The notes: generated by a model from the letters alone, not told the origin. DNA of 64,000 bases from Lepidodermella squamata (GCA_047495785.1 JBLDXI010000019.1:2852001-2916000); one strand, 5' to 3'; counted from the first letter of the stretch, positions 2,275-30,147 are shown. Made by a program: numbers and translations.

Positions 2275-5137
2275 CTATTTGAATTTCATTCCTTGGGTTT
2301 TGGTCGGGAGCATTTTACTTGCCTGTTGCATTTGCAGGGCAGGTCTTATTGGCGGCAGCTTCTGCTGGCCGACAGCGAGCATCGGCTGTTGTGCTAGCAT
2401 TCCTTGCCTGGGCGGCTGATGAGCTATAAATCCTGGCTGTTTAGGCGCTTGCATAGGCATCTGCATTACCGGAGCCTGCATCAGGGCTTTGCTTTTCGAT
2501 GCCTGAGCAAAGGTTTGCTCATAGTAGGGATTTTTCTTTTCCCAATTACGAAGGGTCGCCCCTACAGGTGTCACAGGTCTACGGTTGGAATTAGGCTTTC
2601 CGTCGCGGACACTCGCCTTCTTCTTGCACAGGCAAAAGAGTACAACACCCACAATGACGATGGCAACGATGCCACCAACAACGCCGCCAATTATGTAACC
2701 AAGATTTGGGATACCAGTAGCTTCGGAAGTACTGTTGCCAGGAGATGCAGTCGCTTTGTTCGTTGTAGCCGCATCCTCGCTGCTGCATGGATTGACAGTT
2801 GGCAGGCAAGTGGAAAACTCCAGAGGGCTGCCTATCTCAGCCAGCATCATGGAGGCCATATCAGGCTGACTTATAGCGGCCTGGAAATCGTTTTGCCCAA
2901 TCGAAGCTGGCTCAGTTGCCGCTCTTTTCCGACGTTTTGCATTCAACACACCGCCAGCATCGCAAAACTTCTTCGTCGTCGTTGAGCTGATAGTGTATGT
3001 GATTCTAAAACAGCAGCCTTTTTCAGTTTTCGAGGTATTGGCGTAGTTGGAATCTATGATGTCATCCGTGTTGCTGTAGTTGAGGTTCACATTTTGCTTC
3101 TTAGTATATCCAGGACAGCATATCGAGTAGTTCGCTGCGCATACTGAATTCAGTTTTTTGGCGACATTGTTCTTGATGATTCGTCGTATCTTGAGGAACT
3201 CGTCAATCTTAGGGACTGGTTTGTAGAGCAGATCGACACCCTTCGATTCTTCATCACCGGAGGGTGAACAGCGAGTCGGGTTGTCACATTGCTGATACTC
3301 TTTCGACCCGTCAACTTTCAGTCGCCATTGCACTCCGATGCTGCAAGTTGATGAGCAGGCGGACCAAAATGCGCTTGACAGGCCAGATGTAGGTGGAACC
3401 CAGGTGGTGAGATAACGATCCCCTTCAGTTAGTTTGTCAGCAGAAATCGTTGTAAGATTGCTGACGGAGACAAGACCCTTACTAGGTGTAGTTGAAGCCA
3501 CAGACTTGGCTTTTGTGGTAGCTTTTCCAGCATTTGTGCTAGTTGCTAGGTTACTTGTTGTAGCCTCAGACTGTGGTGAACTCGCCCCAGCTGCGGTTCT
3601 TGTTCCAGTGACAGTCGACGCAGATGAAGCGGTTGATGCCAAAGTAGCTGCAGGTGAAGACTTTGTTACTGTCGTGATTGCAGTTGGGCTGGTTGATGCT
3701 GATGAGGGAGCAGCGGTTGATGTGACTGTCCGCAAAGTCGATGTAGAAGGAGAAGTCTGACTTGAAGGCTGACTAGAGGACGCTGTTACTGCTGTAGTTG
3801 TTGATCTTGAAGTTGAAGTTGACAGCGACGTCTGGCTAGAAGTGGGAGTCCCACTAGCAGTTGACATCATAGTATTTGTCGAACTCGATCGAGTTGATGA
3901 AGTAGAAAGAGTCGTTGTCGATAGCGGCGTAGTTGTTGAAGATTTAGTAGTTGTCTGGCTAGAAGTAGTTGTTGACATGATAGTATTTGTGGAACTTGAT
4001 CGAGTGGATGTGGTTGATATTGTGGTTGGCGTGGATGAGGTCGTTCCACTAGCCGTCAATGCCCAGAAATCGAACTTTATCAACCTGACGTTGCCTGAAG
4101 GACGCAATTTCAAAAGAAGGTCGAAGTATTTATAGCGTAACTCACCGAGATCGCCGTTATCTGCTAACCATCTTGGTTTAGCTATTCCAGATGCAAATGC
4201 AGCTGCAGCTCCTGATACAGGAATGTCAGAGAAGCAAACTGATGCTGGAGTGCTTCCGTTGCTCGACAATGGGGCTATCGCCACCTGCGAACAGATAGAG
4301 GTTAGTCAAGAGATTTAGCCTTTCGGATGAGGATAGCCTCTTCGGCGCATTTAAAATTTTACAAGTCTCGTACCGTTAAAGAGTCATTGCTTAGCTGGAC
4401 GAATAACCGGAAAGAAGCCACGCCAGATGCTGTTGAGAACAAGCTCGATGAACCACATCCAGGGTTCGAAGTCACAATGAAAGGATAAGATCTGATTTCA
4501 CCAGTCAGCGCATTTGTCACAGACACCTTTGCGCTGGCGTTATAGCGCAACTCAAGCCAAACAGTCATCCCGGTGATTCCGCCAGGCGAAATGCTAGTTG
4601 GGACTGAGGAAATTTAGCTGTATTTTGATCGACTAGCCTAGGCAGGTAACTTACGAAATGTTGTTCCGTAACTGGATGAGGATAGGATGAAGCCTAATAG
4701 ACCATAATCGGCCGAGTCATTTACATAAGTTGACGTTATATCCATTTCAGCCCTAAAATTGCTGTCGGTTGTCGGGAAAGCCTGATGTAGAGAAACCAAT
4801 TACTGGATTATGTGCAATTGTTGTACTTTTTCACAAACGGAGGCATGATGGAGCCTTCCATACTGAGAGTTGGTGCTAGTGATCTCGAAATAAGCGGAAG
4901 TTTGGCTTGCTACTTCAAAGGTGCTGAAAGATGTTGAAGCGGCAGAGGCATTGAACGATAAGGCGGATCGATATGTCGGAGTTCCCGCCCACAGGTACGG
5001 CAATGGGAGCGCGGCCGTATTCGGTACCTGTGATATAGCTGAACAGCGACTGTTAACTGTTAATTCAAAAGTGAATCCTTTGAAATACCTGATTTCAGCA
5101 AGCTTAGGAAAATAAGACCTCGGATCATCATGCCCAT
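2275..5137 (-). CDS. Type-I membrane mucin-stalk protein, paralog 1 (signal peptide, A-type N-domain, S/T stalk, TSP1-like/Cys-rich module, furin site, TM, NPYY tail)
   Basis: Spliced by eye: signal exon MGMMIRGLIFLSLLKS, then exons ISQVPNT..., AFPTTDSNFRAEMD..., ...MTVWLEL...FRLFVQL, and the large 3' ORF 2275-4284, which contains a 51-nt in-frame intron at 4095-4145. Motifs WSACSSTCSIGVQWR, KRRKRAA, TM IIGGVVGGIVAIVIVGVVLFCLC and NPYY. Confidence 0.85.
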
Positions 5138-5548
5138 GACTTACTTGAAAAAAAGAATAACGCAAGTCGGAGAATTTTGAAACTCGTCAATAATTAATGC
5201 AGCCTAAAACTTAATGGATACTTATCTATTCGCAACGGTTGGGAACCACTCTTGCTATGACGAGTTTTGAATCAATTAGATTTTTCCTAAAGTGGGGAAT
5301 CCATGCTAGAGCTGACGCGTTAAGGAGGAGTGGAACACTAAAAGGCTTTTAATAAGTACAAAAATATTCAGCCTCAACCAGGTGCTGAAATCCCAGCCTC
5401 TGCAGTTATCGATTGATATCGCCATCAAAAACCTTGGCACAGAGTATATGCTCGATAATTTTCTTTTACGACGGAAATTTTGCGTAGGGGGGGGGTTGCC
5501 TTTGTACCAACAGATGTTGACTATTTATTGCCAGTAACCGGTTACATA

Positions 5549-5985
5549 CCGTAGTTACCGAAATACTAACCCGGGCTTATACAAAAATGATACCTCGAAA
5601 ACTGGGGAAAAGTAGGCTTCTATTCAAGACTAGGCTTCTATTTTAGATAGGCTTATGCAACGGAGACCTGGCGTTACTTTCCGTCTTTCAATCTCAAAAC
5701 TCATCAAAGTATTCATTATTAGTTATTAGCTAGGTCGTCTAATAGCTGGAAATCAAGACTAATAAGGAAAGCATTCACTAAAATCATCATAAACAGCAGA
5801 TTATTACATATCTTCACGCATTTTTTCGTTTTTAAATACTGTTCAGCGCAGCAGAGCACACATGCCGTAATAGCATAGGCTACTATTCGAGATAGGACTA
5901 TGCATCGACGAATTTCAATTTACCTAGGCTTCTAATCGAGACAGGCTTCTAAACGAGTGGGGGCTTATAGTTCGGTGAAGTAACG
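5549..5985. mobile_element. Degenerate CCGTA-type MITE
   Basis: TA|CCGTAGTTACCGAA at the left end and an imperfect inverse (TTCGGTGAAGTAACG) at the right end; repeated internal AGGCTTCTA/GGGCTTAT motifs. Confidence 0.4.
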
Positions 5986-6490
5986 CTCTCTGACTATCCA
6001 ACTCATGCCGAGGTAAAGGTGCTTTTTGAGTATTTACTCCAAAGGCTTTCAATCTAAGAGGGAAAGAATTAGCAATTGGGAACAATCTGCCGAATCCGGG
6101 AGATTGAAATTCGCTTTTCGACCACCTTTTTCCCCTACCCGTTTTATTATTGAAAGCATCAAGTTTCTGCCTCGCAAATAATACTTTACTCTGGTATTAA
6201 CAACCATCATTGATGCACAAGTGTAAAGAGGCTGATAATAGTACAAAATATTACATCTGGAGAGTGCGCCAGAACAATCGTCCAGGATACGTAAGTTTAT
6301 AGGTGATATGATTCTCAGGTCACCAAAGATTAGAGAACACGCATTTTACTAGTAGTCCAGCCGGTAAATAAAACAGAGGAAAACATATAACATTTTCAAA
6401 AAACAGAGGATTAATAACTGAACAAGTAAAGGTTTGGGGTTAAGTGAACAGTGAACCACAAAACAAAAGTTGCATGTTATCTCTGACTTG

Positions 6491-9361
6491 TTATTTGAAC
6501 TTCATTCCTTGCGTTTTGGCCTGGAACATTTTGCTTATTGGCTGCTTTTGAGGGGCAGCCGGTGCTCTCAGCGTTCCAATCGGCGGTAGCTTTTGCATGC
6601 CGGCCACTTGTTGGGGCTGTTGAACCATGAATCCTGGCTGTTTGGACGCTTGCATAGGAGCATGCATTAACGGAGCCTGCATCAAGGCTTTGTTTTTCGT
6701 CGCCTGAGCAAAGGTGTGATCGTAGTAGGGATTGCTCTTTTCCCAATTACCAAGTGTCGCCCCGACAGGCGTCGCAGGTCTGCGACCCTCTAAGCCGGCG
6801 GAATTCGGTTTTCCATCATGAATACTCGTCTTCGTCTTGCAACAGCAATAAAGGACTCCAACAAAAATGACAATAGCAGCTATGCCCCCAACAACTCCGC
6901 CGATTATATAGCCGAGATTAGGGTTACCAGTTCCTTCGGAGGTACTGTTTCCAGGAGATGCAGTCGTCTTGTACGCTGAAGACGCAGCATCCTCGCTGCT
7001 GCATGGATTGACAGTTGGCAGGCATGTGGAAAAATCCAGAGGACTGCCTATCTCAGCCAACATCATGGAGGTCATATCAGGCTGACTCATGGCGGCCTGG
7101 AAATCGCTCTGCGCAATCGAAGCTGGCTCGGCTGCTGCTCTCTTCCGACGCTTCGCATTCAACAAACCGCCGGCATCGCAAAACCTCTTTGTCGCCGTCG
7201 AGCTGATAGTGTATGTGATCCTGAAACAGCAGCCCTTTTCGGCTCTCGATGTGTTCGCATAGTTAGAATCGACGATCTCATCAGTGTTACTGTAGTTGAG
7301 GTTCACCGTTTGCTTCTTCGTGTAGCCAGGACAGCAAATCGAGTAGTTGGCTGCACATACTGAATTCAGTTTCTTGGCGACATTGCTCTTGATAATTCGT
7401 CGTATCTTCAGATAATCGTCGATCTTAGGCACAGGTTTGTAGAGCAGATCGACACCTTTTGACTGTTCATCACTTGAGGCTGAACAACGAGTCGGGTTGT
7501 CGCATTGTTGGTACTCTTTCGACCCGTCGGCCTTCAGTCGCCATTGCACTCCGATGCTGCACGTCGAGGAGCAGGCGGACCATAGTGAGCTAGAGAGGCC
7601 GCCCGAAGGTGGAATCCAAGCGTTCAGGTAACGATCGCCTACGCTGAGTTTGTCAGCAGTAATTGATGTTAAACTGCTGACTGACAAGAGGGCCAAATTT
7701 GTGGCTGTGGCAGTTATCGTCGGTTTCGACGTTGCAGTTACACCATTATCAGCTCCTCTCGAAGAGGTGCTCACTGCATTAGACCCGCTATCGGCCGAAG
7801 TAGTTGATGCCAATTTGCCACTCACTGTTGTTGTAGAGCTTGACGACTGGACAAACGCGCCTGTAGTTGGGTTTGCGGTTGAATCTGAACGACTTTGAGT
7901 TGATGTTGCGGCAGAAGTTGTGTTCGCAGTAGCCGCAGATGAATTCGTGTTCTGCTTCGTGGCCGTTGTAGAGACCGTGACAGTCGTAGTACCACTTGAT
8001 GTACCTTGGCGAGTAGTTGAAATCGAAGACGTCGATAGCGCCGTTGTCGATTTTGAATTCAAGGTTGAGCTTGACACCAAGCTACTCGTCGTCGATGGAG
8101 TTTTACCCGTACTACTAGTCTGGCTTTGGGTCATTGTTGATAGACCAGAGGTTGTGGTTGGCAGGACAGTCGAGGTTTGGCGGGTCGTTGTTGAGGTTGT
8201 AGCTGTGCTTGAAGTTACCGTTGTGCTCGACCGTGAAGTAGAAGAAGCTGCAACGGTTGTCGAGGAATAAATCTCAACCAAACTCCATACGTAACTCTTG
8301 ATTAGAACCAAGTTCGCTGTAAAATTAATTGCCATAAATCATGAAATAATTAGGATGAGCTGATTATTACAAAAGTTCCCGTTAAACCCAAGCCATCGGG
8401 ATTTAACCAGGCCCGTAGCTAATGCCGAGGCCGCTGCTGCGGGAAGGGATATATCGGCTATGCAAATTACGGTAACAGTCGCTCCATTAGCTGGCAGAGG
8501 GGCTAAAGCAACCTGAAAAGCACACGATAACGAATCCAACGATAGCGAAGTAATGAGGTTTGATTATGGCTCACTGTTAAAAAGTTGTTATTCAACTGCG
8601 CAATCAACCGAAACGACGAGGCCCCTGATTGAGAAGCGAAAATACTCGACGAGCCGCAACCCAGCAGAGACGAGGCGATCACTGGTGATAATGGCAGGAA
8701 ACCAGAGCCATTAGTCGTAACAGACGCGTAAATGCCACCTCCATAACCTAATTGCAAAGTGATCGTCAAACCATTGAGACCACCAGTTGAAACAGCGACA
8801 TTAGAACCTCCGTTTATCTCGATAGTTAAATTTGGATAATCTAGTTAGAGTGGAATTAATAGGTGCCAAGGTCAAATACAATTTGTCATAACCAACTTGT
8901 GCTTCCATACGATGTTGACGAGAGGATGAAAGCCGCAATAGCGTAGGATGCTGAGCCACTTACATAAGTCGTGTTCAAGTCCATCTCAATCCTGAAATTC
9001 GTCATACTCGAAGGAAAAGGCTTGAAGAAAAAAGTTACTGGAGTTAATCTTGTTCAAATCGAATCCCACCTCAATGTGATGAAGTCGCCCCAATACGTTT
9101 GAGGCATTAATGATTGTAATACCCTGAGCCTCAAAGCCGGCCACATCCACGGTACTGAAGGCTGCTTGCGACAAGTTAACTGCATCAAACGACAACACTG
9201 CCTGGAAAACAGGCGCTCTGGAATACGGAAGAGCCAGAGATGCCACATCTGGCGATTGGGCTTTAGCTGAAATTCATCAATAAACAAAATGATGTTTCGA
9301 GGCTGACTTAATATTTACCCAGTATCAGCGTTACAGTGAAGGTGAAACAAATTTGAAGCAT
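6491..9361 (-). CDS. Type-I membrane mucin-stalk protein, paralog 2 (A-type N-domain)
   Basis: Signal exon MLQICFTFTVTLIL|gtaaat. ORF pieces 8986-9246, 8503-8769, 8339-8539 and 6491-8335 are collinear with paralog 1, with the same C-terminal module, TM and NPYY. Confidence 0.85.
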
Positions 9362-11029: not shown

Positions 11030-13882
11030 CTACCTCATTCCTTGCGTTTTGGCCGGGAGCATTTTGCTTGCTGGCTGCACTTGTGGAACAGCTCTTATTG
11101 GCGGCAGCTTATGCTGGCCGACCGCAAACTTCGGCTGTTGAGCCATGAATCCTGGCTGTTTGGGCGCTTGCACAGGCATCTGCATTAACGGAGGGTGCAT
11201 CAAGGCTTTGCTTTTTGACGCCTGGGCAAAGGTTTGCTCATAGTAAGGATTACGCTTTTCCCAGTTACCGAGAGTCGCCCCAACAGGCGTCACGGGTCTA
11301 CGGCCCTCTGAGCTGGCGGAATTAGGCTTAGCTGCATGGATACTGGTCTTTTTCTTGCACAGGCAAAATAGTACTATACCCACAATGACAGTAGCAGCAA
11401 CGCCACCAACCGTTCCGCCAATTATGTAGCCGAGATTAGGATTACCAGCAGCGTCGGAGGTACCGTTGTTGCCAGATGATGCTGAGCCTTTGTAGACCGA
11501 AGAAGCAGCATCCTCGCTGCTGCATGGATTAACAGTTGGCAGGCACGTGGAAAAATCAAGAGGACTGCCTATTTCAGCCAACATCATTTGTGCCATATCA
11601 GCCTCAGTCATCGCTGCTTGGAAGTCTCTTTGACCGATCGAAGCTGGATCGGTTGCCGCTCGTTTCCGTCGTTTGGCATTCACTGAACCCCCTGCATCGC
11701 AGAACCGTTTCGTCGCAGTCGGACTAATTGTGTATGTGATCCTAAAACAGCAGCCCTTCTCAGTTTTTGACGTATTGGCGTAGTTGGAATCTATGATGTC
11801 ATCTGTGTTGCTGTAGTTGAGGTTCACCGATTGCTTCTTCGTGTATCCTGGACAGCAAATCGAGTAGTTGGCGGCACAAGCTGAATTCAGTTTCTTCGCG
11901 ACATTGCTCTTGATGATTCGGCGTATCTTCATATAGTCATCAATCTTAGGCACAGGTTTGTATAGCAGATCGACACCTTTTGACTGTTCATCACTTGAGG
12001 CTGAACAACGATTCGGGTTGTCGCATTGTTGGTACTCTTTTGACCCGTCGGCCTTCAGTCGCCATTGCACTCCGATGCTGCACGTCGAGGAGCAGGCGGA
12101 CCAAAATGAGTTCGATAGGCCAGAGGGAGGTGGAACCCAGCCAGTTAAGTATCGATCGCCCTCTCTAAGTCTATCGGCCATCACCGTTGCCAAATCGCCT
12201 ATGGAGAACAAGCTTGCGGCAGTGGAGGTTGTAGTTGCCAAGACTCTTTCCTTGGTTGTAATTGCTGTGAAACTGGCTTGAGTAATGCTCGAAGTTTGAT
12301 TCAGAGATTGCGTCGAACCCGTTCTTCCAGTGACAACTGATTCTGATGTAATCATAGCAGCTGTGGGTGAGCTGGTTGCTCGGTTAGTCGCTGCGCTGCT
12401 GGTGCTGGAAATCATTAAAACTGTTGTTGACATGGGATTCGTAGGTGTTGTAGTTTGAGAGGAGGAGAATGCTTTCATATTAGTCGACGTTGTAATTTGC
12501 CCTGTCGTAGTCGAACTAGTAATGACTGAAGACGAATCTGTCTTCGAAGTTGTTGAGGCAGAAGTTGCCTTTGTAGTTGTCGAAGCTGTCGATGACATGA
12601 AATTCGTTGTTGTGGAAATAGTCGAGCTCGTACGCGTTGAAGTCGAAGTCGTAGATGAGCTTGTCGTTGGATTGGTAACAGGAATCGTCGAGGTCGTTCG
12701 AGTAGAAAGTGTTGTTGTCGAACTACTGACTGCCGCAGTTTGATTAGCTCTCCAGAACAGCATGTTTCTTATTGCCACATTTCCTGGGAGGGATTGTGAG
12801 ATTTATTAGTGAGCTATGAGCTATGGTGTTGGTAAAGAGTATTACCGATTGGAAGGCCGCCATATAGACGAATCTTCGAGTTGACATTTTCCAAAGTAGC
12901 CCCCATGCCTGGAAGGTTAGTGCCACTGAAGCAAATCAGAGGCGAAGCCACGCAATATGAGCTAAGTGGCGCCATAGCAACCTGGGTTTAATCATATCGC
13001 TCGGGTTAGTTGCGTAATGGTTTTCAAATTCTAACTTACAGTCAACACGTCACTTAAAAGCTGAACGATCAGACGAAATCGTGAAACGCCCGACAGAGAA
13101 AAGATCGAGGCACATGTAGTTGAAGTTATGTTCTCTGCTCCGGGCAACCACCCTTCTGAACCTGTAGCGAGAAGCAGCCTACCTGCCGGCTTCAACTCTT
13201 GCCACAGCGATAAACCAGTCATGATATGATAGTACAGATACGAGCTGTTATACTCTGTAAATCGGGTAGATGAAGTGATTTGGGGATAACTGACGAAATT
13301 TTGCTCACCGTACGAAGCGCCTGTTGCCGAAAAGATGAAGCCAAACCACGAGTTGCTATTGGATAAATTGGCTGGGAACTCAACAGTGACGTCTGTCTCC
13401 AATCGCCAGCTGTTGGCATTAGCGGGCTGAAATGCCGGGAAATGGTTTGCATGCGTAGCTAGTAAGTAAAGGCGAACTTACAATTGATAACCATGCGCCA
13501 TTGCTGCGAATCTCGAATGCCGTACTTTCTTGCGCGGCGTCATAATTCAAAGCTACGCTTGCTGATGCGTTAGACGCCTTAACAGCGTCGAATGAAAAGG
13601 CGGGCGCATATGCAGCATTCCACCCAGGCAGAGGCAAAGAGGTTGTGTCTGGAGCTGGTGTCCAGTTTCTTGAACCTGCAAGCATAAATAATAACCCCTT
13701 ATTGCTTTCGATTTTAGCGATGTTACTTGGATTGCTGCAAGCTGAAGAAGTCGTCGACGAGGGGCGAGTTGTAGTTTGCGAATTACCTGGGAAAGAAGCA
13801 GCAAAACTCAACGTAGGAATACGAGATATCAGGACTTACCCAGTGCAAAAGTAGTGCCAAACACGAGAATATATTGAAACAT
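11030..13882 (-). CDS. Type-I membrane mucin-stalk protein, paralog 3 (B-type N-domain only; tail ends GMR*)
   Basis: Signal exon MFQYILVFGTTFAL|gtaag (13882-13840), then exons GNSQTTT..., ...WLSI|PANANSWRLETD...FRLIVQLLSDVLT, and the large ORF 11030-12778. Confidence 0.85.
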
Positions 13883-15900: not shown

Positions 15901-18900
15901 TTATTTGAACTTCATGCGCTGGGCTTGGAACATGTGGCTGTTAGGCAGCATTTGTGGAGGGGGCTTCGGCGCCATTGCTCCAAGAGGCGGGAGTTTTTGC
16001 TGTCCAGGATATTTCGTCAATGAAGGCCCGACATCATGCGGTCTGGGTTCAAGCTGAGTTCGAATAAATCCCTTTGAAGCGGCGTTTTGCATGAGGGCGT
16101 TGCTTTTGGGCCCTTGAGTAAGAATTTTATCATAGTAAGGATTACTCTTGTCCCATTTGCTAAGCGTAGTCCCAACGGGCGTTGAGGGCCTTCTATCATC
16201 AGAGACCACCGAATTACGCTTAACAACACTCGAGCTTCCCTTTTTCTTACAAAGGAGATAATAGAAGGCAATTACCACAATGACAACGAAAACAACTCCG
16301 CCAACAACGCCCCCAATTATAACGCCAAGGCTAGGGTTGGAGGCAGCTTCTGACGTAGTGTTTCCAGGTGTGGTTGCTTGATTGACAGAAGAAGCAGAGT
16401 CTTCACTACTGCATGGATTGACAGTTGGCAGGCACGTAGAAAACTCCAGAGGGCTGCCAATTTCAGCCAACATCATCGAAGCCATATCAGGCTCGGTAAT
16501 AGCGGCTTGGAAATCACTTTGACCGATCGAAGCCGGCTCGGCTGCCGCTCTTTTCCTACGTTTTCCATTCAGTGAGCCAGCTGCATCGCAGAACTTCTTC
16601 GTCGCCGTCGGACTAATTGTGTATGTGATCCTAAAACAGCAGCCCTTCTCAGTTTTCGAGGTATTGGCGTAGTTGGAATCTATGATGTCATCTGTGTTGC
16701 TGTAGTTGAGGTTCACAGTTTGCTTTTTGGTGTATCCAGGACAACATTTCGTGTAGTTGGCTGCACATGCTGAGTTAAGTTTCTTGGCGACATTGCTTTT
16801 AATGATTCGTCTTATTTTTAGGTATTCGTCAATCTTAGGCACAGGTTTGTAGAGCAGATCGACACCCTTCGACTGTTCATCACTGGAGGCTGAACAACGA
16901 GTCGGGTTGTCGCATTGTTGATACTCTTTCGAACCGTCAGCTTTCAGGCGCCATTGCACTCCGATGCTGCAAGTCGAGGAGCAGGCGGACCATAAAGAGC
17001 TTGAGAGACCGCTCGAGGGTGGCATCCACGCGTTCAGGTATCGATCACCCTCTTTGAGCTTGTCAGCCGTCACCGATGTCAAATTGCTAACGGAAACAAG
17101 AATAACAGTCATTGCCGTAGTGGCTGATTTTGGTTTAACTGTCGAGCTCGCCCCAGCATTGGCTGCTACACTACTAATAGTCTGCAAGCTTGTGCTTGTG
17201 GAAGTGTCAATAAGGGTTGAGGTCGATGCTGTTAGCGCATTGTTAGCTGATGTCGAACTTGGCATAGCTATTATCGCCGAAGTTCCCGATGTGGAATCTG
17301 AAGCCGACGATGAAGTTGACTGCGTTGCACTTCCGGTTTTTCCTGCAGTCGAGACTGCTGTGTTAGTTGAGCGCGTGGCAGTAGAAGATGCCCAAGTCGG
17401 CGTTTGGCTTGAACTTATAGATGTTGTCGAACGTGTTGACGTTGGCAGTGTTGCAGTTTGGTTTGTGGTCGCAGATGCCATGGATTTTTGGGTAAAAGGT
17501 GAACTGCTTGTAGAAAGTGTTCCATTCAAGTGCCAGAAGAACATGTTTCTCATGGTGGCATTTCCTGTATTTTGCCTTCAATCAAATCTATATCAAACTC
17601 AAACCTTGATAAAAAAACCTGCAGTTCCAAAGCTCGCATACAGACGGATCTTGGTACTCACATTCTCAGTAATAGCTCCCGCGTTAGGTAAGCTGACCCC
17701 ACTGAAACAAATCAAAGACGCCGCCATGCAATCCGAGTTCATAGGAGCCATAGCGACCTGAGTTTGGCAAAAATATTTCAAGGCATTATTTATTAGCAAC
17801 AAGGTACCGTCAACATGTCGCTCCAAAGCTGAACAATCAAACGGAATCTCGAAACACCGGTCGAAGTGAATAATGGGCTACAGGTAGTTGAAGTGAGATT
17901 GGGTCCATCAGGCAGCATCCCCGAGGAACCTGTAGACAGATAAAGCTTGCCAGATGGCTTCACTTCTTGCCAAATGGAAAGCCCGGTCAACGTATTGTAC
18001 GCCATGGACCCATCATTATTGTGCGCTAGAAGGTAAAGGTAAAGGTAATAAGGTAAAATATCCACTGATTGAGGTTCAAAACTGACGAAAAACTAACAAT
18101 AAATCACGCTGGTTGACGAAATGACAAATGCGAACCACGTATTGTATGATATATTAGTTAGGTATCTCGTCGTTACATCAGTTTCCATTCGCCAGTTACT
18201 TTCGTAGGCAGGCTGAAACGCATTTTTATAATTAGACGTTTCATTCGGCAAAATCATCGCACTCACAATCGATAGCCAACCTCCAGAGTTATTTACGCTC
18301 TCTGTCAGCTCAAATCCCAAAGAAGTTTGTTTTGCAAACAGATTAAGCATTGGACTTGCAGATGCATCCGAAGCTAGGGTGGTATCGAATGAGAAATTCT
18401 GAGCATAAGTGGCAGTTGAGCCGTCCAAACTCAGCGAGTCAATGTCAGGCGTTGGTGTCCAGCTTCTAAGAGCTGAAATAGAGATATGTTTACACGTTAT
18501 TCAGTCTAGAACAATTTACCGCTCTTTGAACTACCGCATATTGGTGTCGTAGTTTGAGGGGGAGTTGCAGTAATTCCGCCCGGTGATAGCTGCCAAAAAC
18601 GTTGGCCAATGACGGCCAATGTTGCTAGAAATGAATTAAATCTCAGTTGGAAATTAACGAAGTCCAATCTCTAATACAGTAGTTTCCGAAGAAAGAAACC
18701 CAGCGCGGTTTCGCACTTCCTGTTCCAATCGCAGTGCCTGCTATTGAAGGAACGGGGACATCAGAGAAGCATACTGCAACTGGGGTCGTCCCATTGGCTG
18801 GCAGGGGCGCTAAAGCAACCTAGGAAGGATAAAAGTCTAATAAGAATCGGAACTACATTTGAATCTTTACGAAAGAAATGCTCAAAGATTACTCAGCGAA

Positions 18901-19964
18901 ATTGTGATAATGTTATACTGTGAAGAATGTCCGCTTTTTTGACGGTATTCGCTGTTTAGTACCCTGGAAGATTGCTATTGCAAAGTACAGAAAGCGGGGA
19001 GGAAAGGGGGTGGGGATACAGCGGGTACCCCCAGCACGAGTGCTGCAAGCAAGAAATCCGCAGGGGAGGGGCCCTTTGGTGCGAAAGTAACCAAAAGTCT
19101 CATTTAGCTCGATAATTCCCATGCTGTTCTATGCTAAATCCCAACCTGCACTGCCTGTATAGTCGCTTTATCATGCCGTATTCACCGTGTAGGCTGTCTT
19201 ACCGTCAGAAGATTGTCGCTCATTTGGGAGATCAGCCTATACATCGCAACACCAGATGGCGCCGCGAAAACGTTTGATAAGCCGCAGCCAGGCTTCGACG
19301 TCGCAATAACGGGATCCAACGGCAGGGTTCCAACAGCGTTACTCGTGGCTGACGCGTATACTCGTCCCCCGTAGCCCATCTCTATGACAATAGACAACCC
19401 ATTGAATCCAGTAGGAGCCAATATTGAATAAGCTGCAATTACAAATTGATGAAACAGTTCAAAGATTTATTTAAATAAATTAACACGTGTATCCATAAGA
19501 TGTTGACGATAATGAAAACGCGGCTTTTCCGAACGTTCCAGAGCCATCAATATACGTAGAACTCAGATCCATCTCGATCCTGATGTTAGTTGCAGTAGAG
19601 GGCAAGGCCTACAACATATAATTAGGCCATTAAATTGTTTTAATTCATCATGAGAAACTTGCTGTTCCCATATTAACTCGCCCAGTTCCAAATGTAGCGT
19701 TGGTTAATTCAATGCCCTGAGCGCTTTGTCCCGCAATCGTAACTGTGCTAAACACAGTCAGTGGCGTCGTTGCCCCATCGAAAGACAAGGCCTGCTGGAA
19801 CGCAGGTGTTCCTGCCCAAGAATATGGCAGGGCCAGAGATGCCGTATCTGGAGACTGAGCTGCCCCTGATGAAAATTCTCATCTCATAGTAAGTATTCCA
19901 TGGAATGAAACGAGAACATACCCAGCGCACATGTTACTACCGATATGAATAGAGTTTTCAGCAT
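15901..19964 (-). CDS. Type-I membrane mucin-stalk protein, paralog 4 (tandem A + B N-domains)
   Basis: Signal exon MLKTLFISVVTCAL. A-domain exons at ~19865-18530 splice in frame through the linker GGITATPPQTTTPICGSSKS into B-domain exons at ~18473-17600, then into ORF 15901-17553. Confidence 0.8.
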
Positions 19965-20699
19965 TTCGAAAGGCTTTTCAAAAACAAAATTTGGAAATGC
20001 AACAGTCTGTGGAGAGTTGGCGCAGCCTGTCATCGAAAACCATTTTCAAAACCGATGAATAAATAATGTTCCGCTTGTTGATAAATCTTTTGTAAAATAA
20101 GTAGGCGCGTCGCTTTTTCCGGTTTAGTGCTGCGGGGTTTGCAACCCTGATGAAGTTTTTTTGTATCATTTCAGAATAAAGATTGCCTCGCGTGTGTCGA
20201 GTGTGCATCCTACGATTTCGCCTGTGATTCAAACTAGAAACCTCACAAACAGTGGGAAAAACCTCATCAATTTTGAATTCTCACTGTGACCCTGGCCGTG
20301 TTGCTTGGAAATGTCGCAGCACTTACGCTGCTCCATGTTCTCCTGTTTGGGCAAAAGCAGTTGAAAGATATGTCTGAAATAGCTGATCAGGCAATAATAG
20401 CTGATAGATTTCGCCTACGAAAACGTTGATCGTAAACCGTGAACTATGCGTTTCAGGAGCGTGAGCTTACTCTCCCGAACTGACTTCGGGGATCTGGCTT
20501 GGGCAGCTCTCTGCTGGTAGAACGAATCAGAGAGAGATCAGATAGGACACTTCACTATAGTTTCCATTTCAACATCGTTTTGAGACCTCAATGATCCCAG
20601 GTGCCAGCATTGCAGAGCTAGATGTTTTCTTAACTTATCTTGAATTGTTGGGTCGGTTTCTGAGTTACCGCTCAGAAAAATAGCTCGGTTTTACGGAGG

Positions 20700-21800
20700 A
20701 AGATGGCAAAAGAATTGAGCATTTCGCTCTCTTGACTCGTACGAAAAGCGAAACGTTACACGGTTTGTGACCTTTAACCTTGAAATTTGAAACTGTCTTA
20801 TCAAAAACCATGGCCAATTTTATTCCCAAGGCAGTTCTATTCCATATCTTCCGATGCTTGGTGATTGTTGAGTTGCTTGTTGTGGTTGGACGAAACTGGT
20901 TTTTTTATGTTTTAGAATTAAATGTTAGTCCCAAAAATAAAAAAATGCCGAACCTTCGCTCGATGATAAATGATTGACTGGTAAATAACAAGTTGATGCA
21001 ATTAAATATGCTGAAGGTCGGATACCAAGGCAGAGGGATAATAGAAAGCCTTTGGTGGTTTTACCGTTTACGATGACACTAACTGCGAAACGGTCGACGT
21101 TTCGATTTCAATAAGGTGACACCGTTGAATCCAAATAATCAATCCGTTTTGCCGTCGGATGAGCAGCATTATTGACTTGGCTACGCACGAGTAACGTGTG
21201 AGAACCGGTCACACAATCGTCAGAGTTATGCGCAAAGGCTCGGATAAATAGGCAAACATCGACAGTCAAACAATGTTTGCCAAACAACGGCTTCAAACAT
21301 CGCATTTACACGTTCAGTTTGTAGAAAACGATATCAAACAAAATCACTGGGGGATGCGATTTTGTTTGACACCCAGTGATTTTGTTAGACAAACATGCAA
21401 ACATTTGGCGTTGTGGCTGCTGCGGAGATGCCAGCCGGAACGGCATCTGCGGAAGTTTTGCATGCGCTTCTTCAAAAATGGATAGAATCTGACCACATAG
21501 AGCAAAAAATTGCTGGAGTCGCACGGCAAGGAAAAAAATCGAATCAGAGAGGTTGAAAATTTAAAAGCATTCTATCACCCGGTTATGGTGTTTTCGCCTA
21601 TTATGCAAATTATGCATAAAATATCTTGATAATTTTGCATAAATTAAGCTATTTTCTTTTGATGATTTGCATACATTTTGCAAAATTTCTTGCAAATTTT
21701 GTTTGAGAGTGTTTGAGAGTGCACTCTGTCCTACAATTACAAATTCAAGACAATTAAAATGGTTTACAATCACAATGCAAATGTATATGCAAATGTAAAT
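20700..21800 (+). mobile_element. Possible highly decayed LINE remnant, interrupted at its 3' end by the following TIR element
   Basis: Only weak, broken RT C-terminus-like peptides. The segment after the insertion (25315-25355, ctcttctgggcgat...ggcttct(aaat)n) recurs at ~56840-56888. Confidence 0.25.
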
Positions 21801-22027
21801 GCAAATGTAAATGTAAGTGGGTCTATTTCATCTGCTCTCAGAAAAAGGATTATGAATTATTTGTGAGTGAAATAAGATTTTGTAATTATTTTTATTCACT
21901 CAAAAATAAAAACAGATGCCAGCCCCCATTGTACTCCCTAATTAACTCGCCAGTTTGCGCATCGAGGTGTTCAAAGTCCGCGTCTCTTTTGCGTCCGACT
22001 GCTATTTTAGGAGTCGAGCTGAGAGAA

Positions 22028-23251
22028 AAGCCGCTTTTACACTACTACTATGCGAATGGTAAACGATTGTAATTACTCGATTGTTAAATAACAGTGATTA
22101 ACTCGTTTCTGCTTATTGTCACGGTTTTATCGTGATGATTTTTAGAGAACTTGAAAAATTGGAAACATTTTACAATTAATTAGAAATAGTTTCATATAGG
22201 TATTTAGGCTACTCGTTTACAAGGTGATCAATTTTCCGTCAAACCGGGTAGATAGGATGCTAGAGCTTTATTCAGTGCCAGCATGAATTTAATCGCCATT
22301 GCATGATTGAAAAAATTATCGCGAAAATTCCCCGAATTTTCCTTGATTTCGCGAAGCGTTTAGTTAAATTTGCTGGACCAACTCCTTGCTTCATCACCTT
22401 GAACTCGTGGCTTTTCCATGTCAGGAAATTTTCGAGAATCCAATTTTGGGGTATTTATAAGTATTTTTCATGGTATTTCATTCTTGACCGCTTTTTCACA
22501 CAAAAAACTGCTGTAAAATTGATTGGCTTCTTAAAAAAATCATTCGATTCTCTTGGCACATGGAGAAATGTTTACCCAGTTCGAAATATCGAAAGCCAAG
22601 ATACGCTCAAGCATCACCGAGGGCTGGTCATTCTAGTATAAATTTGTTTTAAATTATTATTAATTATTATTAAGTCTTGTTCTTTAAGTGATGACCGTGC
22701 TAATTATAAGTACAGGAAACCACGGGGAATTTTACGACCAATATTTCTTTCTAAATTAATCGTGAATTTTGAAAATTAAATTGCATAAACACGTTTACAA
22801 CAAATTTGGTTCCGCAACAGGCGACTTTGTTTCAACTAAAAGTGAAACCCTCTTGAGAATTTTGCGGCAATTTTGCGGACAACAGTCAATGAAACACATT
22901 TAAACATATTATTTAAATGTTTTCTTGCAGACAAGCCCTGAGTTCACGGTCGAATTTGCTAAATCTTACAAATAATTTAACGGATTTTCTTCTCGATGTG
23001 TTCAATTATGCAAAGGCGGGAATTTTCGTTTGAGTGCTGAATCAAAATCAGGAATTCACGAGAAAATTAGCATGCCATCATATCTTTTGAAATTAGCCAG
23101 AAAATAATCAAAATGTTTTTAATTCTTTCTAATTCTCTCTTAACAGCGATAAAAAACGTTAAAATCAAATAAAAGCAAGCTAATAACTGTTATCTAACAA
23201 TGGACTAATTACCATCGTTTACCATTCGAATGGTGCAGTGTAAAAGCGGCT
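22028..23251. mobile_element. Nested inverted-repeat element
   Basis: agccgcttttacact...cgaatggtaaacgattgtaatta versus taattaccatcgtttaccattcg...agtgtaaaagcggct. Confidence 0.6.
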
Positions 23252-23326
23252 AAAGACGACGCTTCTACCCGACCACTGCGCGTCGTTTGGGCGATTATCG
23301 TCTCTTTCTCGTCTCCAGCGAACATA

Positions 23327-23669
23327 GAGTGAACCGCTCTAATTTCGGACAGTTTAAGGTCCCTAATTTCGGACACATCAAGGTAAGCTTCAACCTAGTC
23401 AAATTTGGTATCGTTCGAAAGCCCTCCATGAGTTGATGACGAATATCGATAGTTCGGCCGAAAAAGTATAATTTAGGCTTATTTGTGTGAGTTTCAAGGT
23501 GACATGAATGTGTGAAACTCAGGTAAACAAACCTAAACAATGACATTCGTCATCAGCTCATCGAGGGCTTTCGAACGACACCAAATTTGACTGGGTTGAA
23601 GCTTACCTTGATGTGTCCGAAATTAGGGACCCGTACTTGGGCACAGTCCGAAATTAGAGCTGTTCACTC
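23327..23669. mobile_element. Foldback MITE, GAGTGAAC family, TA-flanked
   Basis: TA|GAGTGAACCGCTCTAATTTCGGAC ... GTCCGAAATTAGAGCTGTTCACTC|TA, with arms of about 110 bp. Confidence 0.8.
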
Positions 23670-26600
23670 TACCAGATGACGTTTCCAGCATTTTTCTTTT
23701 TTTCGTAGATAGCCGTCGTTTTTACACTAGCGGAGGGTTACGGAGGCGTTCGTTAATGCCGTCAGTTGCCACCCCTATTTCGAGGCTCTGTTTTGATTAC
23801 GCAACTGAGCTTTCACGAAAAAGCGAATTTTTAATTTTTAATTTGTTTTCGGCATTAAAATTCCGCCGTTATTTTTTCAGGGAAAAATCAGTCGATAGAA
23901 CATAAAAGCATTATTAGGCTGGGTTTGCATCAACTTAAGCCACCTGAAAATCAATTTTCGTGGTTATGGCCCTCGAAATTTAAGCAATGGAAAAACAAAA
24001 AATCATTTTTTGAATGTCACCGAAGTAAAGAATATTTTGACTGTCAAATGTGATCAAAATTTGTATTTACCGTCAATATGAGTCACGTAATGCTATACTT
24101 GAAGGCCGCGGCAATGTTTTCGCTTTTCATATTTATTTGAAATTGGGGGCGATTAAACACCCTATAGGTAATGAACCGTGTACTAAAAGCCATAATCAAA
24201 CATAAAAACACAGGGATAAATAGTTGACGAATATCTAAAATGCGAGGTAAATTCATATCGCATGGGCAGAAAAATCTTAGAAAAATTCAAAATGTCATGA
24301 GAATAGTAAGCAAGTATGTCACTTGTCAATGAGTTGACAATAATTTAGATTAAAATGAACCAACCGGGTAAAATACATTAGTCAAAATTACCGTAAACAG
24401 TTAAAATCGGAGTTTTCCGGGTTATCTTCGCTAAATTTTTTGATTTACTCGGTGAAAAGCGCGGATGAAGAATCAAATATTCTCTTTGAATTTTTTTCCG
24501 AAATTGCGTCCAAAAACTTCGTCCAAAAACAACGTCCGAAATTGCAAAATAAAAAAAGTTGCGCAAATGAGAAATAATTTTAGGAAAGTATAAACACGTC
24601 CCGGAGTTACAATAGGACGAAATTCTCAATCGATGGCTATCTAAATCAGCTGAAGCAATTTTAAACAATTTTCGACGTTCGGGTTGATATAGCCGAATTC
24701 GGCCGAATATTCTTTTGCTGATCAAATTTCCGACTGGCAAATGGCAAAATTTGTAAATTTGATCAAAAACTCAATTATTGAAAAAATTCAACATGTCGAA
24801 ATATTCGAATAATAATTGAGGATATTAGTAAAAATAACTTTGAAGTACCAACTAAGAAGAAAATATATTTTTGAAATTTCTTTTTGAAATTGGTTTCTTG
24901 ACGCTTCGGAAAAAATCAAAATTCAATTTTCTGAAACTCTTTAGTTGCGTAATCAAAATTTGTCTCAACAGAGCCGTTAAATAGATGATAGCAACAGATG
25001 TAATTAACGAATGCCTCCGTACCCCTCCGTCGTGTAAAAACGACGAGCGTGCGGCTTGCGAGAACCGTAACTGCGAAAAAATGAAATATTCTAATCCCTG
25101 GATTGTTCAACAACATTGCGTCTTATCCTCCTCAGCCTCCAGCTGAAATAACAAATTAGTTTATTTTTGAGATCATCCTTTTCTCCGTTACTCGCTGAAA
25201 ATAAAATAAAATGGAATTTCACAATGAAAAGTCACCATTTTTAAGTGAGCAGATGAAATAGACCCTATGGTTCCACTGTATATGTTTCTCTTTCATTCAA
25301 AACTTGCTAAGCTGCCCTCTTCTGGGCGATGAGGCTTCTAAATAAATAAATAAACAGTGTAAATGAAAGTTTGACAAACTCATGTTTGAAGCTCTGCTTT
25401 TCCGACATTTGATCGTATAAATGCATTTCATACATTTTCATCAATCATCGATGTTTGAAGTAAATGTTCGAGAAACTGTTTGCCCGTTTAGCCGACCCTT
25501 AAGAGTTAAGCCTCATGCTTTAATATGCGTTAGTTTGCAGTTTATAGTATTTTATGCATTTTCTCCAATATTAATCATTTGTGTATTTTAACTTTTCATA
25601 CTACGCATAGCGAAAAAAGTTAATTTTTTCTCTACGTTAGCGGCGTCGTCATATTGTTGAATCATGTTATTGCAGTTGTCTCTCATGCTCGCTAGCATTT
25701 CGGTATAAGCCTCCACTTGACGGTAATTACTGTCAACTCGAAGCGCAAACAATGCTTCGTAATCAACAACCGACGGTAAAAATAGCTGCGCACTACGATG
25801 TATATTCAGCAGGCGATGAGTAAGTTAGTCGTTTTCGGGAAGCCGTTGCTACCTCAGTTCATTAATCTTTTTTCAAACTTTGTGATAATAACTATATTTC
25901 AAACTTTTACATTTCATCATGCTAAAGCTTGCATTGTTCATCGGCGTTGCGGTGAGGCTGAGCAATTCGCTATATCAATTGTCATTATATTTATTTACCA
26001 ACAGGCTGTTCTCGCCATGTTGTTCTTAGCCGAAGGCGCGCCGGTTGACGAGCAGGTAGAGGCGGAAAGAGCCCTGTTTTGCTACGGCAATACGCTGAAG
26101 AGTCCCACGCTGAAGAGTTGCGTTGTGATTGGAAGCAAGTGTACAAGCGAAATCGGTTTACCTGGTACATGGAAAGCATTAGGCGGGCCCATTGCTTATT
26201 GCGGCTTTTAGGTGGACGGGGTAGATTCAATGTCTGTTTGAAGTATGAAGCGAGAAATGATTTAGATGTGGGGATTCGCTTGAGAAACATTATAACATGA
26301 TATTAACTCTATTAGCTCTATTCTTGGGTCTTGGAAGCCTTATAGCGTAATAAAGCAAATGAATAGCCACGATAATTTAATTCTTTGGCACTCTCAGCAT
26401 GTTTTGTTTTTGGCTGAGTTTGACAGAATGGGCACCGCATTGCCTTTTAGGCTTTCAGATCCCTTCTTCGTGTTCCGTGCTTCAAATGGTGAACATAGAG
26501 ATTATTTTTTCGAAATTTTCAGAGAAATGCAGAGCAGTAAAATCGTGAAAAAACAATTCCTTGATTTTCAGAAAAATCGACATTGAAGCATATTTCGCAT

Positions 26601-27386
26601 TGGGTTTGTAATGATGAAACTCTATATTTCAATGTTTGGAGTGAGCTTGGAAGATTTTCTTTTCTGATTTTCTATAATTTTATAAATTATTCCACTTTTT
26701 TACATCACAAAAATGTAGATTCCTACATACGCATGGTAAAATTGTGCCATTGGGAAATTGAATTTCTCCATGGCAACTAATAATTTCTGCCAAAAATGAA
26801 ACTGCCAAAAAATTGGGCAGCATTTTGCTCGGAATTAGCCTCAAACCCCCCCAGCCCCCCCCCCCCCCCCCCCCCCCATGAAACGCATTTTCTCGAGAAT
26901 CGCAGGAAAGTCACAGAAAGAGCGAAAACCTCAATTTTATTAGAAAGCAATTTCACGTGCAAAAACAAAAATGTGACAAAACGAGGCAAAACGAGGTCTT
27001 CGAAATCTCTTGCTGGTAGCCGTCGCGATGCAGATCCGGTTCGGTTTCCTCCTCGAATTCGCGGTTTTGAGCAGCAACGGAAATTCAGCGACGAGCCATA
27101 GCAACGTCAGAGGCGACAATGACTGGTTTCTCGGCGAATCTTCGACCGGCAAAATTGACCCAAATCCATGGATTAATTTCCGCCGCGACCTGGATACCAC
27201 GTTTGATATAATGCAGCAATCAAAAAGAAGGAAACAAACCAAGACATGGCGCTTGAAAAGGCCTTCAAGAGGCAACAAATTTAGGGAGGGAACGGCCATA
27301 GATCACTAAACTACACATAACCAGTTTAATTTACAGTGTTCTTGATCTCATCCTTCATCCTCGGAAAGGAATTTTTCACCCCGTAG

Positions 27387-30147
27387 TTAATTATACTTCA
27401 TTCGCTGCGATTGCGCGTGTGGCATGTTGGTCTTTTGCAGCATCCTTTGTGGAGGGGGCTTAAGCGTCATTGCAAGAGGTGGAAGCTTTTGCTGACCAGT
27501 CGGAAATTTCGTTGATGCAGCCCCGTAATCAAACTGAGATGGTTTAGGTATCTTTGAAGCTGTCGGTTGCAATGAGACGTTGTTTTTTGGCGCTTGAGTG
27601 AGCATTTGATCGTAGTAAGGATTACTCGTGTCCCATTTACCAAGTGTAGTCCCGACTGGCGTTGGTGGCCTTCGACGTCCAGATACCCCAGAATTAGGTT
27701 TCACGTCACCTGTGTTGTCTTTTTTCTTACACAAACAATACAAAATTACAACAACGATGACAAAAGCAACGATTCCCCCAACGGCGGCCCCGATTATTAC
27801 GCCGAGACTGGGGCTGGACGTGGTATCTGATGTACTGTTGCCAGGTTTATAGGCAGAGGAACCATCATCCTCGCTGCTGCAAGGATTGACAGTCGGCAAG
27901 CATGTGGAAAACTCCAGAGGGTTGCCTATTTCCGCCAACATCATCGAAGCCATATCAGGCTGACTCATCGCGGCCTGAAAATCGCTCTGCGCAATCAAAG
28001 CTGGCTCAGTTGCCGCTCTTCTCCGACGCTTCGCAGTCATTGAACCGCCAGCATCACAGAACTTCTTTGTCGCCGCTGAGATGATGACGAAGGTGATCCT
28101 GAAACAGCAGCCCTTTTCAGTTTTCGAGGTATTTGCGTAGTTCGAATCGATGATATCATCCGTGCTGCTGTAGTTGAGGTTCACGTTTTGTTTTTTCGTG
28201 TAGCCAGGACAGCAAATCGAGTAGTTGGCTGCACAAACGGAATTGAGTTTCTTCGCCACATTGCTCTTGATTATTCGTCTTATCTTCAGGTAATCGTCAA
28301 TCTTAGGCACAGGCTTGTAGAGCAGATCGACGCCTTTTGATTGTTCATCACTGGAGGCTGAACAACGAGTCGGGTTGTCGCATTGTTGGTACTCTTTCGA
28401 ACCGTCGGCCTTCAGTCGCCATTGCACTCCGATGCTGCACGTCGAGGAGCAGGCGGACCATGATGAGTTGGAGAGACCGCTCGAAGGTGGAATCCAGGCG
28501 GTGAGATAGCGATCGGCTTCGCTGAGCTTGCCAGCACTTATTGATGACAAATCACAGATGGAAACAACAGTTTGTGCTGTGCCCGTAGTACCAACAATGT
28601 TTGCTACGCTACTGATCGTCGCGGCCTTACTACCTACAGTAGTTCCACTAATCGATGATTGAGGAATAGTTGAGGCAGTTGCAGACAACATGTTATTAGC
28701 TGTTGTGGAACTAGCCACAGATGAGATAGTGGTAGTGCTAGAAGTCACATCCGACCGAGCTGACGCTGAATTTGACGGCGATGCACTTTCAGTTTTTGCA
28801 GCAGTCAAGACTGTTGTGCTCGTTGAACGTGTTGAAGTCTGAGTCGAACTTGTTTGACTTAGGGTTGATGTCGAAATAGGGTATGTTGTAGTTTGAGTAG
28901 TGGCTGCCCGCGTTGCGGAGTTTGTAGACGATATCGAAGTCATTGTTTGAGTCTTTTGGGTAGAAGATGAATCACTAGTTGAAAGGCTTGTCGTTGTAGG
29001 GGGAGTCGCAGTAAGTCCGCCCGGTGATAGCTGCCAAAACCGATGGTTGATGATGCCGAAGGTCGCTTAATATAGAGAAATCTCAGTGAGAAAGTAGTAA
29101 AACGCATTTTTACCTATGGTTCCAAAGAAAGAAATCCAGCGCGGTTTTGCAGCCCCAGTTCCAATCGCAGTGCCTGCTATCGAAGGAACGGAGACATCAG
29201 AGAAGCATGCAGCAACTGGGGTCGCTCCATTGGCTGGCAGGGGCGCTAAAGCAACCTAGATTAGCATAAATAATTTAATCTAAAACTCGTAACTACATTC
29301 TAATGCTGCGTTTAGGTCATTTCAAATAAATTTCAATTAAGTAATGGCTAGAACGGAGCTGGCTGTCTTACCGTCAAAAGATTGTCGCTCAATTGAGCAA
29401 TCAGTCTGAACAACGCTAAGCCGGATGGCGCAGTGAAAACGTTTGATAAGCCGCAGCCAGGCTTCGACGTTGCAATAACGGGTAGCAACGGCAGGGTTCC
29501 AACAGCGTTACTTGTGGCTGAAGCGTATACTCGACCTCCGTAGCCCAACTCTACAACAATCGACAGTCCATTGATGCCTGAGCTCGTAATAGAAAGATTC
29601 CCTAAAAAGTCGATGACTAAAATCAGCGACAGGTTGCATAAAGTTAAATTACCGCTGTAGCTATCGTTGCTAATGAAGTTGTAATATCCATACGATGTTG
29701 ACGACAAAGTATAAGCTGCTTTTGCGAACGGAATGTCGCTATAAGTTGAACTTAAATCCATTTCAACTCTGAAATTTGTTGCGGTAGAGGGCACAGCCTG
29801 CATAAATAAATTATGTGGTCATAAATCAGTTTCGTCCGAGATAACTAGCCGTTGCAAAATTAATTCGCCCAACTGTGGAGGTATAGTTGTCGGTTAATGC
29901 GATGCCCTGGGTGCTTTGGGATGCCACATCGAACGTGGTGAATTTTGATGACGATACGTTTGCCCCGTCGAAGGATACCACTTGCTGGAAAATAGGCGCT
30001 CCAGCGTAAGAATAAGGCAAAGCCAGAGATGCTGTATCTGGAGACTGAGCCGCCCCTGATGGAAACTTTCATCTCCCGATACTGCATTGAAAAAGGTTTG
30101 AACATACCCAACGCCCATGTTACTGCCAATGCGAATAACGTGTTCAT
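27387..30147 (-). CDS. Type-I membrane mucin-stalk protein, paralog 5 (A-type N-domain)
   Basis: Signal exon MNTLFALAVTWAL; ORF pieces 29826-30020, 29348-29803 and 27387-28943; KRRRRAA, TM and NPYY. Confidence 0.85.

Follow-up and report, generated by a model that had tools for sequence, protein, structure and literature searches.

We analyzed the region from 2275 to 30147 in a 64,000-nt stretch of genomic DNA from Lepidodermella squamata (the whole stretch is referred to as the window, and positions are counted from its first letter). On the minus strand, this region holds a tandem array of five paralogous genes, which probably encode lineage-restricted type I membrane glycoproteins that present recognition heads on a common processing and signalling chassis. 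The heads, the membrane-proximal base, and the cytoplasmic tails carry different, discordant histories, and all parts are under purifying selection. The domains have no detectable relatives; the kind of protein is familiar, namely a type I surface receptor with a stalk, a conserved chassis, and gene conversion limited to one region. An initial annotation of this DNA had proposed surface proteins with a variable head and a constant base, and the type I architecture described below supports that proposal.

Five long open reading frames (ORFs) of 518–669 aa on the minus strand are the last exons of the five genes, and upstream of each lie short, mutually similar ORF pieces in shifting frames. Gene models were built by hand. 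Every frame-keeping GT/GC..AG intron between adjacent ORF pieces was enumerated, and the solution with the same position and phase across all paralogs was chosen. This resulted in five intact multi-exon coding sequences without interruption, comprising 854, 865, 839, 1062, and 813 codons for genes 1 to 5, respectively, with proteins of the same numbers of aa. All features given below are on the minus strand unless stated otherwise. Gene 1 (2275..5137, head type A) has exons at 5137–5089, 5038–4839, 4781–4655, 4603–4374, 4284–4146, and 4094–2275, with GT-AG introns of 50–89 nt. Gene 2 (6491..9361, head type A) has exons at 9361–9319, 9266–9070, 9020–8897, 8840–8575, 8512–8371, and 8316–6491. 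Gene 3 (11030..13882, head type B) has exons at 13882–13840, 13786–13727, 13675–13482, 13426–13309, 13254–13040, 12981–12846, and 12783–11030. Gene 4 (15901..19964, head A followed by head B) has exons at 19964–19922, 19865–19663, 19608–19485, 19432–19203, 18819–18678, 18624–18520, 18472–18267, 18212–18098, 18025–17808, 17757–17619, and 17564–15901. Gene 5 (27387..30147, head type A) has exons at 30147–30108, 30055–29850, 29797–29653, 29601–29372, 29255–29114, and 29065–27387. No further copy of head or base was found in the window by a hidden Markov model (HMM) scan of its six-frame translation.

The introns were consistent in position, phase, and length between paralogs. They measured 47–62 nt, with three longer exceptions of 89, 116, and 383 nt. 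Between genes 5 and 4, whose heads form the closest pair, the differences in intron length were not multiples of three. Two introns were of the GC-AG type, with donors at 29849 in gene 5 and 19662 in gene 4; they occupy homologous positions, at which genes 1 and 2 have a GT donor. The 383-nt intron of gene 4 (18820–19202) precedes the fifth exon, and the corresponding intron is 116 nt long in gene 5 and 50–89 nt in the other genes; the extra length is probably an insertion. Sequencing run X1 is of DNA and covers the introns, and no splice joint was seen in run X2, which is of undefined kind, with a low share and odd strand-switching contigs.

Each protein consists of a signal peptide encoded by a separate exon, a head of about 250 aa encoded by four exons, a Ser/Thr stalk, a base of 236 aa, a transmembrane (TM) helix, and a tail. 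The last head strand and the stalk, assigned by composition, are encoded at 28575..29065 in gene 5 and at 3481–4094, 7697–8316, 12218–12783, and 17107–17564 in genes 1 to 4. The stalks are 142–192 aa long, contain 51–62% Ser and Thr and no cysteine, show no tandem DNA repeats, and could not be aligned between genes, in agreement with the initial annotation that they differ in length and sequence. The base ectodomain with its 12 conserved cysteines was delimited by alignment (27867..28574 in gene 5; 2773–3480, 6989–7696, 11510–12217, and 16399–17106 in genes 1 to 4) and has three to four N-glycosylation sequons. Its almost invariant block, previously estimated at about 210 aa, runs from DRYL to SSED and has 164 invariant columns out of 216, with a protein identity of 87–90% between pairs of genes. 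All of the base motifs noted previously (DRYL, WSACSSTCSIGVQWRLK, CCPGY, KGCCFRIT, KRR(K/R)RAA, and CLPTVNPCSSED) were present in the five genes.

The base starts with a degenerate motif similar to the thrombospondin type 1 repeat (TSR), in which WSACSSTCSIGVQWRLK is invariant in the five genes. This motif, detected by a sub-threshold Pfam TSP_1 score and a PDB profile match, is located at 28359..28469 in gene 5 and at 3265–3375, 7481–7591, 12002–12112, and 16891–17001 in genes 1 to 4. A basic KRR(K/R)R site that fits the furin-type consensus and would be a candidate for cleavage is invariant in the five genes (28017..28031 in gene 5; 2923–2937, 7139–7153, 11660–11674, and 16549–16563 in genes 1 to 4). 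The TM segment with a GGxxGG motif was assigned by hydropathy and by sub-threshold Pfam matches to TM_ErbB1 and Syndecan (27732..27806 in gene 5; 2629–2703, 6842–6916, 11360–11434, and 16252–16329 in genes 1 to 4). The cytoplasmic tail (27387..27731 in gene 5) is 110–121 aa long, and RRPxTPVG, NPYY, and QKLPP are invariant in the five genes; NPYY is encoded at 27612–27623 in gene 5 and at 2521–2532, 6722–6733, 11240–11251, and 16132–16143 in genes 1 to 4.

The five genes contain six heads in total. The initial annotation had described a five-gene array with one head per gene; the number of genes was correct, but gene 4 has a complete second head upstream, in frame, at 19964–18520. The heads align end to end with 29–74% identity and 29 invariant columns among 272, and the motifs pointed out previously (SFD, RxE(M/T)D, FRLxxQL, and VAxAP..C) are retained in them. 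Type A is found in genes 1, 2, and 5 and in the first head of gene 4, and type B in gene 3 and in the second head of gene 4. The head A cassette of gene 4 (18520..19865) is most closely related to the head of gene 5, with 74% aa identity, and its head B cassette (17619..18472) to the head of gene 3, with 55% aa identity. In gene 4, head A is followed by a short linker and head B, and the junction is a 47-nt phase-1 intron (18519–18473). The head cassette is flanked by phase-1 introns in every gene, with internal phases of 0, 1, and 0; thus, the reading frame stays intact when heads are gained, lost, skipped, or swapped. In gene 3, a 60-nt stalk-like mini-exon (13786–13727) lies at the place matching the inter-head site of gene 4, apparently a remnant of a lost head A. 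If the intron at 18519–18473 were retained, the frame would stop 12 nt into the intron, just beyond the exon end at 18520, and a secreted protein with only head A would be produced. An isoform with only head B would arise if the signal-peptide exon were spliced to 18472, as both are in phase 1.

We propose the following mechanism for this family. The heads would be ligand-binding modules, probably with a ConA-like beta sandwich and perhaps carbohydrate-binding, and the head of each gene would have a distinct ligand specificity. The O-glycosylated stalk would project the head tens of nanometres above the membrane. A furin-type convertase would cleave the shared base at the basic site into two chains that stay associated, as is the case for other surface receptors that are cleaved, and through the NPxY tail every member would be linked to a common phosphotyrosine-binding (PTB)-type adaptor or endocytic machinery. 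If the models are right, the array illustrates modular receptor design in a compact natural form, with several old heads on a shared stalk, processing, and signalling chassis, in which the exon structure permits head exchange and region-limited concerted evolution can be traced site by site.

The same architecture would also suit adhesion between cells, between cell and matrix, or between gametes, in which case the heads would bind partners on the substrate or on other cells, the stalk and base would tether them mechanically, and the protein could be shed by cleavage at the basic site. Head-on-stalk proteins serve adhesion in membrane mucins, dystroglycan, selectins, fungal adhesins, and apicomplexan TSR adhesins, and the presence of the TSR-like motif is consistent with such a role. 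Nothing in this DNA separates adhesion from receptor function; however, with its invariant NPxY, the long conserved tail points to intracellular partners more than to a passive tether. We regard adhesion as an unlikely main function.

Selection on the heads bears on the idea, raised by the initial annotation, that the array resembles invertebrate allorecognition or immune loci. In this explanation, the heads would be highly polymorphic determinants of self and non-self or of pathogen recognition under diversifying selection, and a tandem array with variable distal and constant proximal parts does resemble such loci. Contigs of run X1 over the head exons at 29525–29772 were found in two forms, one identical to the window and one with 9.3% divergence, which does not correspond to the gene 4 paralog. 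The divergent form might represent a strongly diverged allele. Over the most conserved part of the base (28206–28473), however, the summed contig depth in the same run was 515–704, several times that of the flanks (about 76 nearby), suggesting more family members than the five in the window; thus, the divergent form may belong to another paralog. At 28206–28473, though, short contigs of conserved sequence from the five copies accumulate as well. Synonymous divergence between heads was saturated in most pairs, indicating that the heads are old and not recently diversified. Where it was finite, the ratio of nonsynonymous to synonymous divergence (dN/dS) was 0.11–0.28, with a maximum of 0.83 by windows, so that no sign of an arms race was seen and the heads appear to be under purifying selection wherever this is measurable. 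Allorecognition is doubtful as the function of the family. We give a similarly low likelihood to a lineage-specific recognition system in which exchangeable, highly polymorphic head cassettes are shuffled among genes and alleles onto one chassis, with the divergent form in run X1 as an allele; if true, it would represent a locus for self and non-self or pathogen recognition made of domains without known relatives.

The likeness of the base among the genes was ascribed in the initial annotation to gene conversion or strong constraint, and our results indicate that both apply. Its report of long identical nucleotide stretches was overstated: the DNA identity of the base is 81–86% and the longest identical runs are 29–62 nt, which argues against recent homogenisation. 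By the Nei-Gojobori method, the base showed nonsynonymous divergence (dN) of 0.06–0.10, synonymous divergence (dS) of 0.53–1.0, and dN/dS of 0.06–0.14, and dN/dS in the tail was 0.08–0.32. Differences at 4-fold degenerate sites were counted only at sites in the same codon family. They were 0.30–0.45 in the base for all ten pairs and 0.59–0.85 in the heads for all pairs except two, namely genes 3 and 5 (0.50, from 30 sites) and gene 5 with head A of gene 4 (0.32). Tails differed by 0.36–0.37 within genes 1, 2, and 3, by 0.47 between genes 4 and 5, and by 0.53–0.73 between these two groups. The synonymous divergence of the base was thus not as high as that of the saturated heads but about half of it. 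Codon bias is weak, with an effective number of codons (ENC) of 53–58, and the low dS of the base therefore cannot be put down to it.

Site patterns also differed between the parts of the genes. In the tail, 45 of the 88 informative sites split genes 4 and 5 from genes 1, 2, and 3. In the base, the informative sites supported all ten possible splits of two genes from three; these were clustered in local blocks and mutually incompatible, and neighbouring sites were more compatible than permuted ones (p = 0.005, local-compatibility permutation test). For gene 5 and head A of gene 4, the proportion of synonymous differences (pS) fell from 0.4–0.85 in the first two thirds of the head to 0.15–0.37 in the last third, suggesting a breakpoint within the head. 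The halved synonymous divergence of the base and its mosaic site patterns indicate that strong constraint (dN/dS of about 0.1), together with old (dS 0.5–1.0), patchy interlocus conversion or recombination, keeps the base alike.

A comparable case is TLR1 and TLR6, tandem receptor paralogs in which gene conversion is limited to one region (PMC2077338). There, the membrane-proximal, transmembrane, and signalling part is converted and the N-terminal ligand-binding part diverges, a pattern similar to that of the present array (PMC2077338). In contrast to the converted DNA of TLR1 and TLR6, which is nearly identical within species, the tracts found here are old (dS 0.5–1.0). Conversion in the present family also lies mainly in the ectodomain base, and the tails retain a two-group history.

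Without any gene conversion, every part of the genes would be of the same age, and purifying selection alone would account for the similarity of the base. The substantial dS of the base (0.53–1.0) and identical runs of at most 62 nt fit this explanation, as does the pair of genes 4 and 5, for which dS is about equal in head (0.69), base (0.87), and tail (0.88). It does not account for the 4-fold differences of 0.30–0.45 in the base against saturation (0.53–0.85) in nearly all head pairs and between-group tail pairs, for the low base dS under weak codon bias, or for the different groupings obtained from head, base, and tail and the clustering of compatible sites. We consider it quite improbable. 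A passive glycocalyx of protective mucins, in which heads without a specific ligand coat the surface, would agree with the long Ser/Thr-rich stalks but is very improbable, as purifying selection keeps distinct old head types with 29 invariant columns despite saturated synonymous divergence, and the stalks, which are free of repeats, are shorter than expected of a barrier mucin.

No relative of the family was found in profile (base to C-terminus), word, Pfam, Atlas, or PDB searches, so that the initial statement of an unrecognised family stands. A word search with the base gave no match. An exhaustive profile search from the base to the C-terminus against 1.84 billion representatives gave 104 matches, among which no family member was identified. 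The top match (P0001) is a bacterial repeat protein without cysteines whose score was summed over 11 near-identical repeats, and P0003 is a VWA and TSP_1 protein outside the family. The other matches inspected (six sequences and five Pfam scans) are generic Ser/Thr-rich membrane proteins with a GxxxG TM segment, and the remaining rows align to the same TM-proximal profile positions. In Pfam, nothing was above the threshold for the last exons, the tails, the module after the TSR-like motif, or the ten head exon pieces. Atlas feature searches with the base and the central head piece gave no usable match, and literature searches returned no description of such a family.

The TSR-like motif was compared with known repeats. 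Pfam TSP_1 scored 15.8–17.5 bits in the five genes (cut-off, 21.6) and TSP1_CCN 17.0–18.6 bits (cut-off, 27). In the PDB profile search, the best match to base positions 22–58 was the alpha-TSR of Plasmodium CSP, with an E-value of 2e-4 on two-copy fusion chains and about 0.06 on single copies. The invariant WSACSSTCSIGVQWRLK contains the TSR core W-S-x-C-S-x-T-C-x-x-G-x-Q-x-R. CSSTCSIG in the base fits the TSR O-fucose consensus C-x-x-(S/T)-C-x-x-G. The likeness to CSP comprises the core WSxCSxTCxxGxQxRxK and, ahead of it, a segment alignable with the CSP region that precedes the TSR. The base differs from TSR proteins in having one copy with four cysteines in the stretch, fused to an eight-cysteine module of no assigned family. 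AMOP is an eight-cysteine module that follows a TSR in isthmin; membership was rejected, as no Pfam match was obtained at E-values up to 10 and only the cysteine count of eight and the position after the TSR are shared.

Positions 260–334 were colinear with APP C99 over about 72 residues in the PDB profile search (E-value 0.002, 20 bits). The shared features are a GxxxG-type TM segment, a KKK stop-transfer signal, a TP motif, and NPxY followed by F-x-Q, a likeness that suggests coupling to PTB adaptors and endocytosis by analogy. Most of the score, however, comes from the TM helix, and the ectodomains are unrelated. The five tails gave no match to the Pfam APP C-terminal family at E-values up to 10. 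We therefore treated this as a resemblance and did not accept APP/APLP membership. The tails of genes 2 and 3 (6841–6491 and 11359–11030) have TSIH directly after the KKK/KTK stop-transfer signal, like YTSIHHG of APP, and with VTP and NPxY it makes up the colinear 20-bit match to C99; we take this as coincidence, because the other three genes lack TSIH.

The family is similar to mucins of the MUC1/MUC13 type and to dystroglycan in that these are type I proteins with an O-glycosylated stalk, a compact cleaved membrane-proximal module, a single TM segment, and a short signalling tail. In dystroglycan, a globular domain at the N-terminus additionally precedes the mucin region. The present family differs from these proteins in the furin-type site in place of SEA autoproteolysis, in the 12-cysteine base, and in the TSR-like motif. 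No SEA domain was found by Pfam at E-values up to 10 in the module after the TSR-like motif or in the last exons, and the GSVVV motif is absent; where SEA-type proteins have the autoproteolysis motif, this family has the basic RRKR site. The exhaustive profile search detected no sequence relationship to membrane mucins or dystroglycan. Fungal adhesins (Flo/Epa/Als) and selectins likewise carry a variable lectin head on a long stalk, in arrayed families that exchange segments by recombination. Their heads are PA14, immunoglobulin-like, or C-type lectin domains, with glycosylphosphatidylinositol anchors or CCP stalks, whereas the present family has an all-beta head of no assigned family, a TM helix, and an NPxY tail.

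The fold of the head was described in the initial annotation as beta-rich and possibly ConA/LamG-like. Heads were searched as exon pieces, which are short owing to the introns. AlphaFold2 gave an all-beta model of the central 142-aa head piece (10 rows) with a predicted local distance difference test (pLDDT) score of 42, and the model from the base to the C-terminus (5 sequences) had a pLDDT of 34. The beta-rich character of the head thus agrees with a low-confidence model, but a ConA/LamG-like fold was not supported beyond weak leads. Pfam showed no ConA-like profile match with the ten head exon pieces at E-values up to 5, and no lectin was among the PDB profile matches. With the N-terminal half of head B as query, all matches in an Atlas feature search were ConA-like/Laminin_G_3 clusters (score 0.86, 90 of 256 features shared), a weak lead that may point to such a fold. 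The head motifs may also resemble, in colinear order, those of legume-type lectins. As neither head nor base has a relative among about 1.8 billion representative proteins, a solved structure of either would add a sequence family, and perhaps a fold variant, that is new.

Several points weigh against recognition heads on a common chassis as we propose them. Splicing, the two-headed product of gene 4, and expression are predicted, and the runs that bear the locus are of DNA or of undefined kind. Furin cleavage, O-glycosylation, ligand binding, and the function of NPxY are likewise deduced from motifs. The pLDDT scores are too low to establish a fold for head or base, Foldseek with the head-piece model gave nothing below an E-value of 0.5, and the Atlas score of 0.86 falls short of the 0.9 level; scores of this size are obtained with shuffled sequences in about a third of cases. 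The TSR assignment does not reach the Pfam thresholds, with only four of the usual six cysteines within a stretch of about 35 residues. The extent of conversion is uncertain, as homoplasy adds to the incompatibility among five sequences with a dS of 0.5–1.0.

The surroundings of the genes showed several further features. The summed depth of run X1 was 1000–1900 at 27000–27267 and 700–840 at 30484–30751, compared with about 76 nearby, and these look like repeated elements that flank gene 5 on both sides. The 7.4-kb gap between genes 4 and 5 (20000–27387) is GC-poor, with a GC content of 0.35–0.40 from 20 to 26 kb, and no Pfam match was obtained for the four largest ORFs in it. Two plus-strand ORFs at 16964–17761 (265 aa) and 2404–2985 (193 aa) lie opposite the last exons of genes 4 and 1, respectively, in antisense orientation. 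Codon composition on the coding strand apparently gave rise to both as by-products, and they do not look like genes; the former spans much of the gene 4 stalk. The neighbouring gene at 31262–37055 was rejected as a relative of the heads by HMM scan and hhalign, and no LamG module was found by Pfam in the neighbouring ORFs that were scanned. At 31262–37055 and 45722–49236, neighbouring ORFs contain Peptidase_C1 fragments, a cathepsin propeptide, and a CBM_14 chitin-binding domain, and farther along an AAA-type NTPase is followed by strong ankyrin repeats, which partly matches other entries of the initial annotation.

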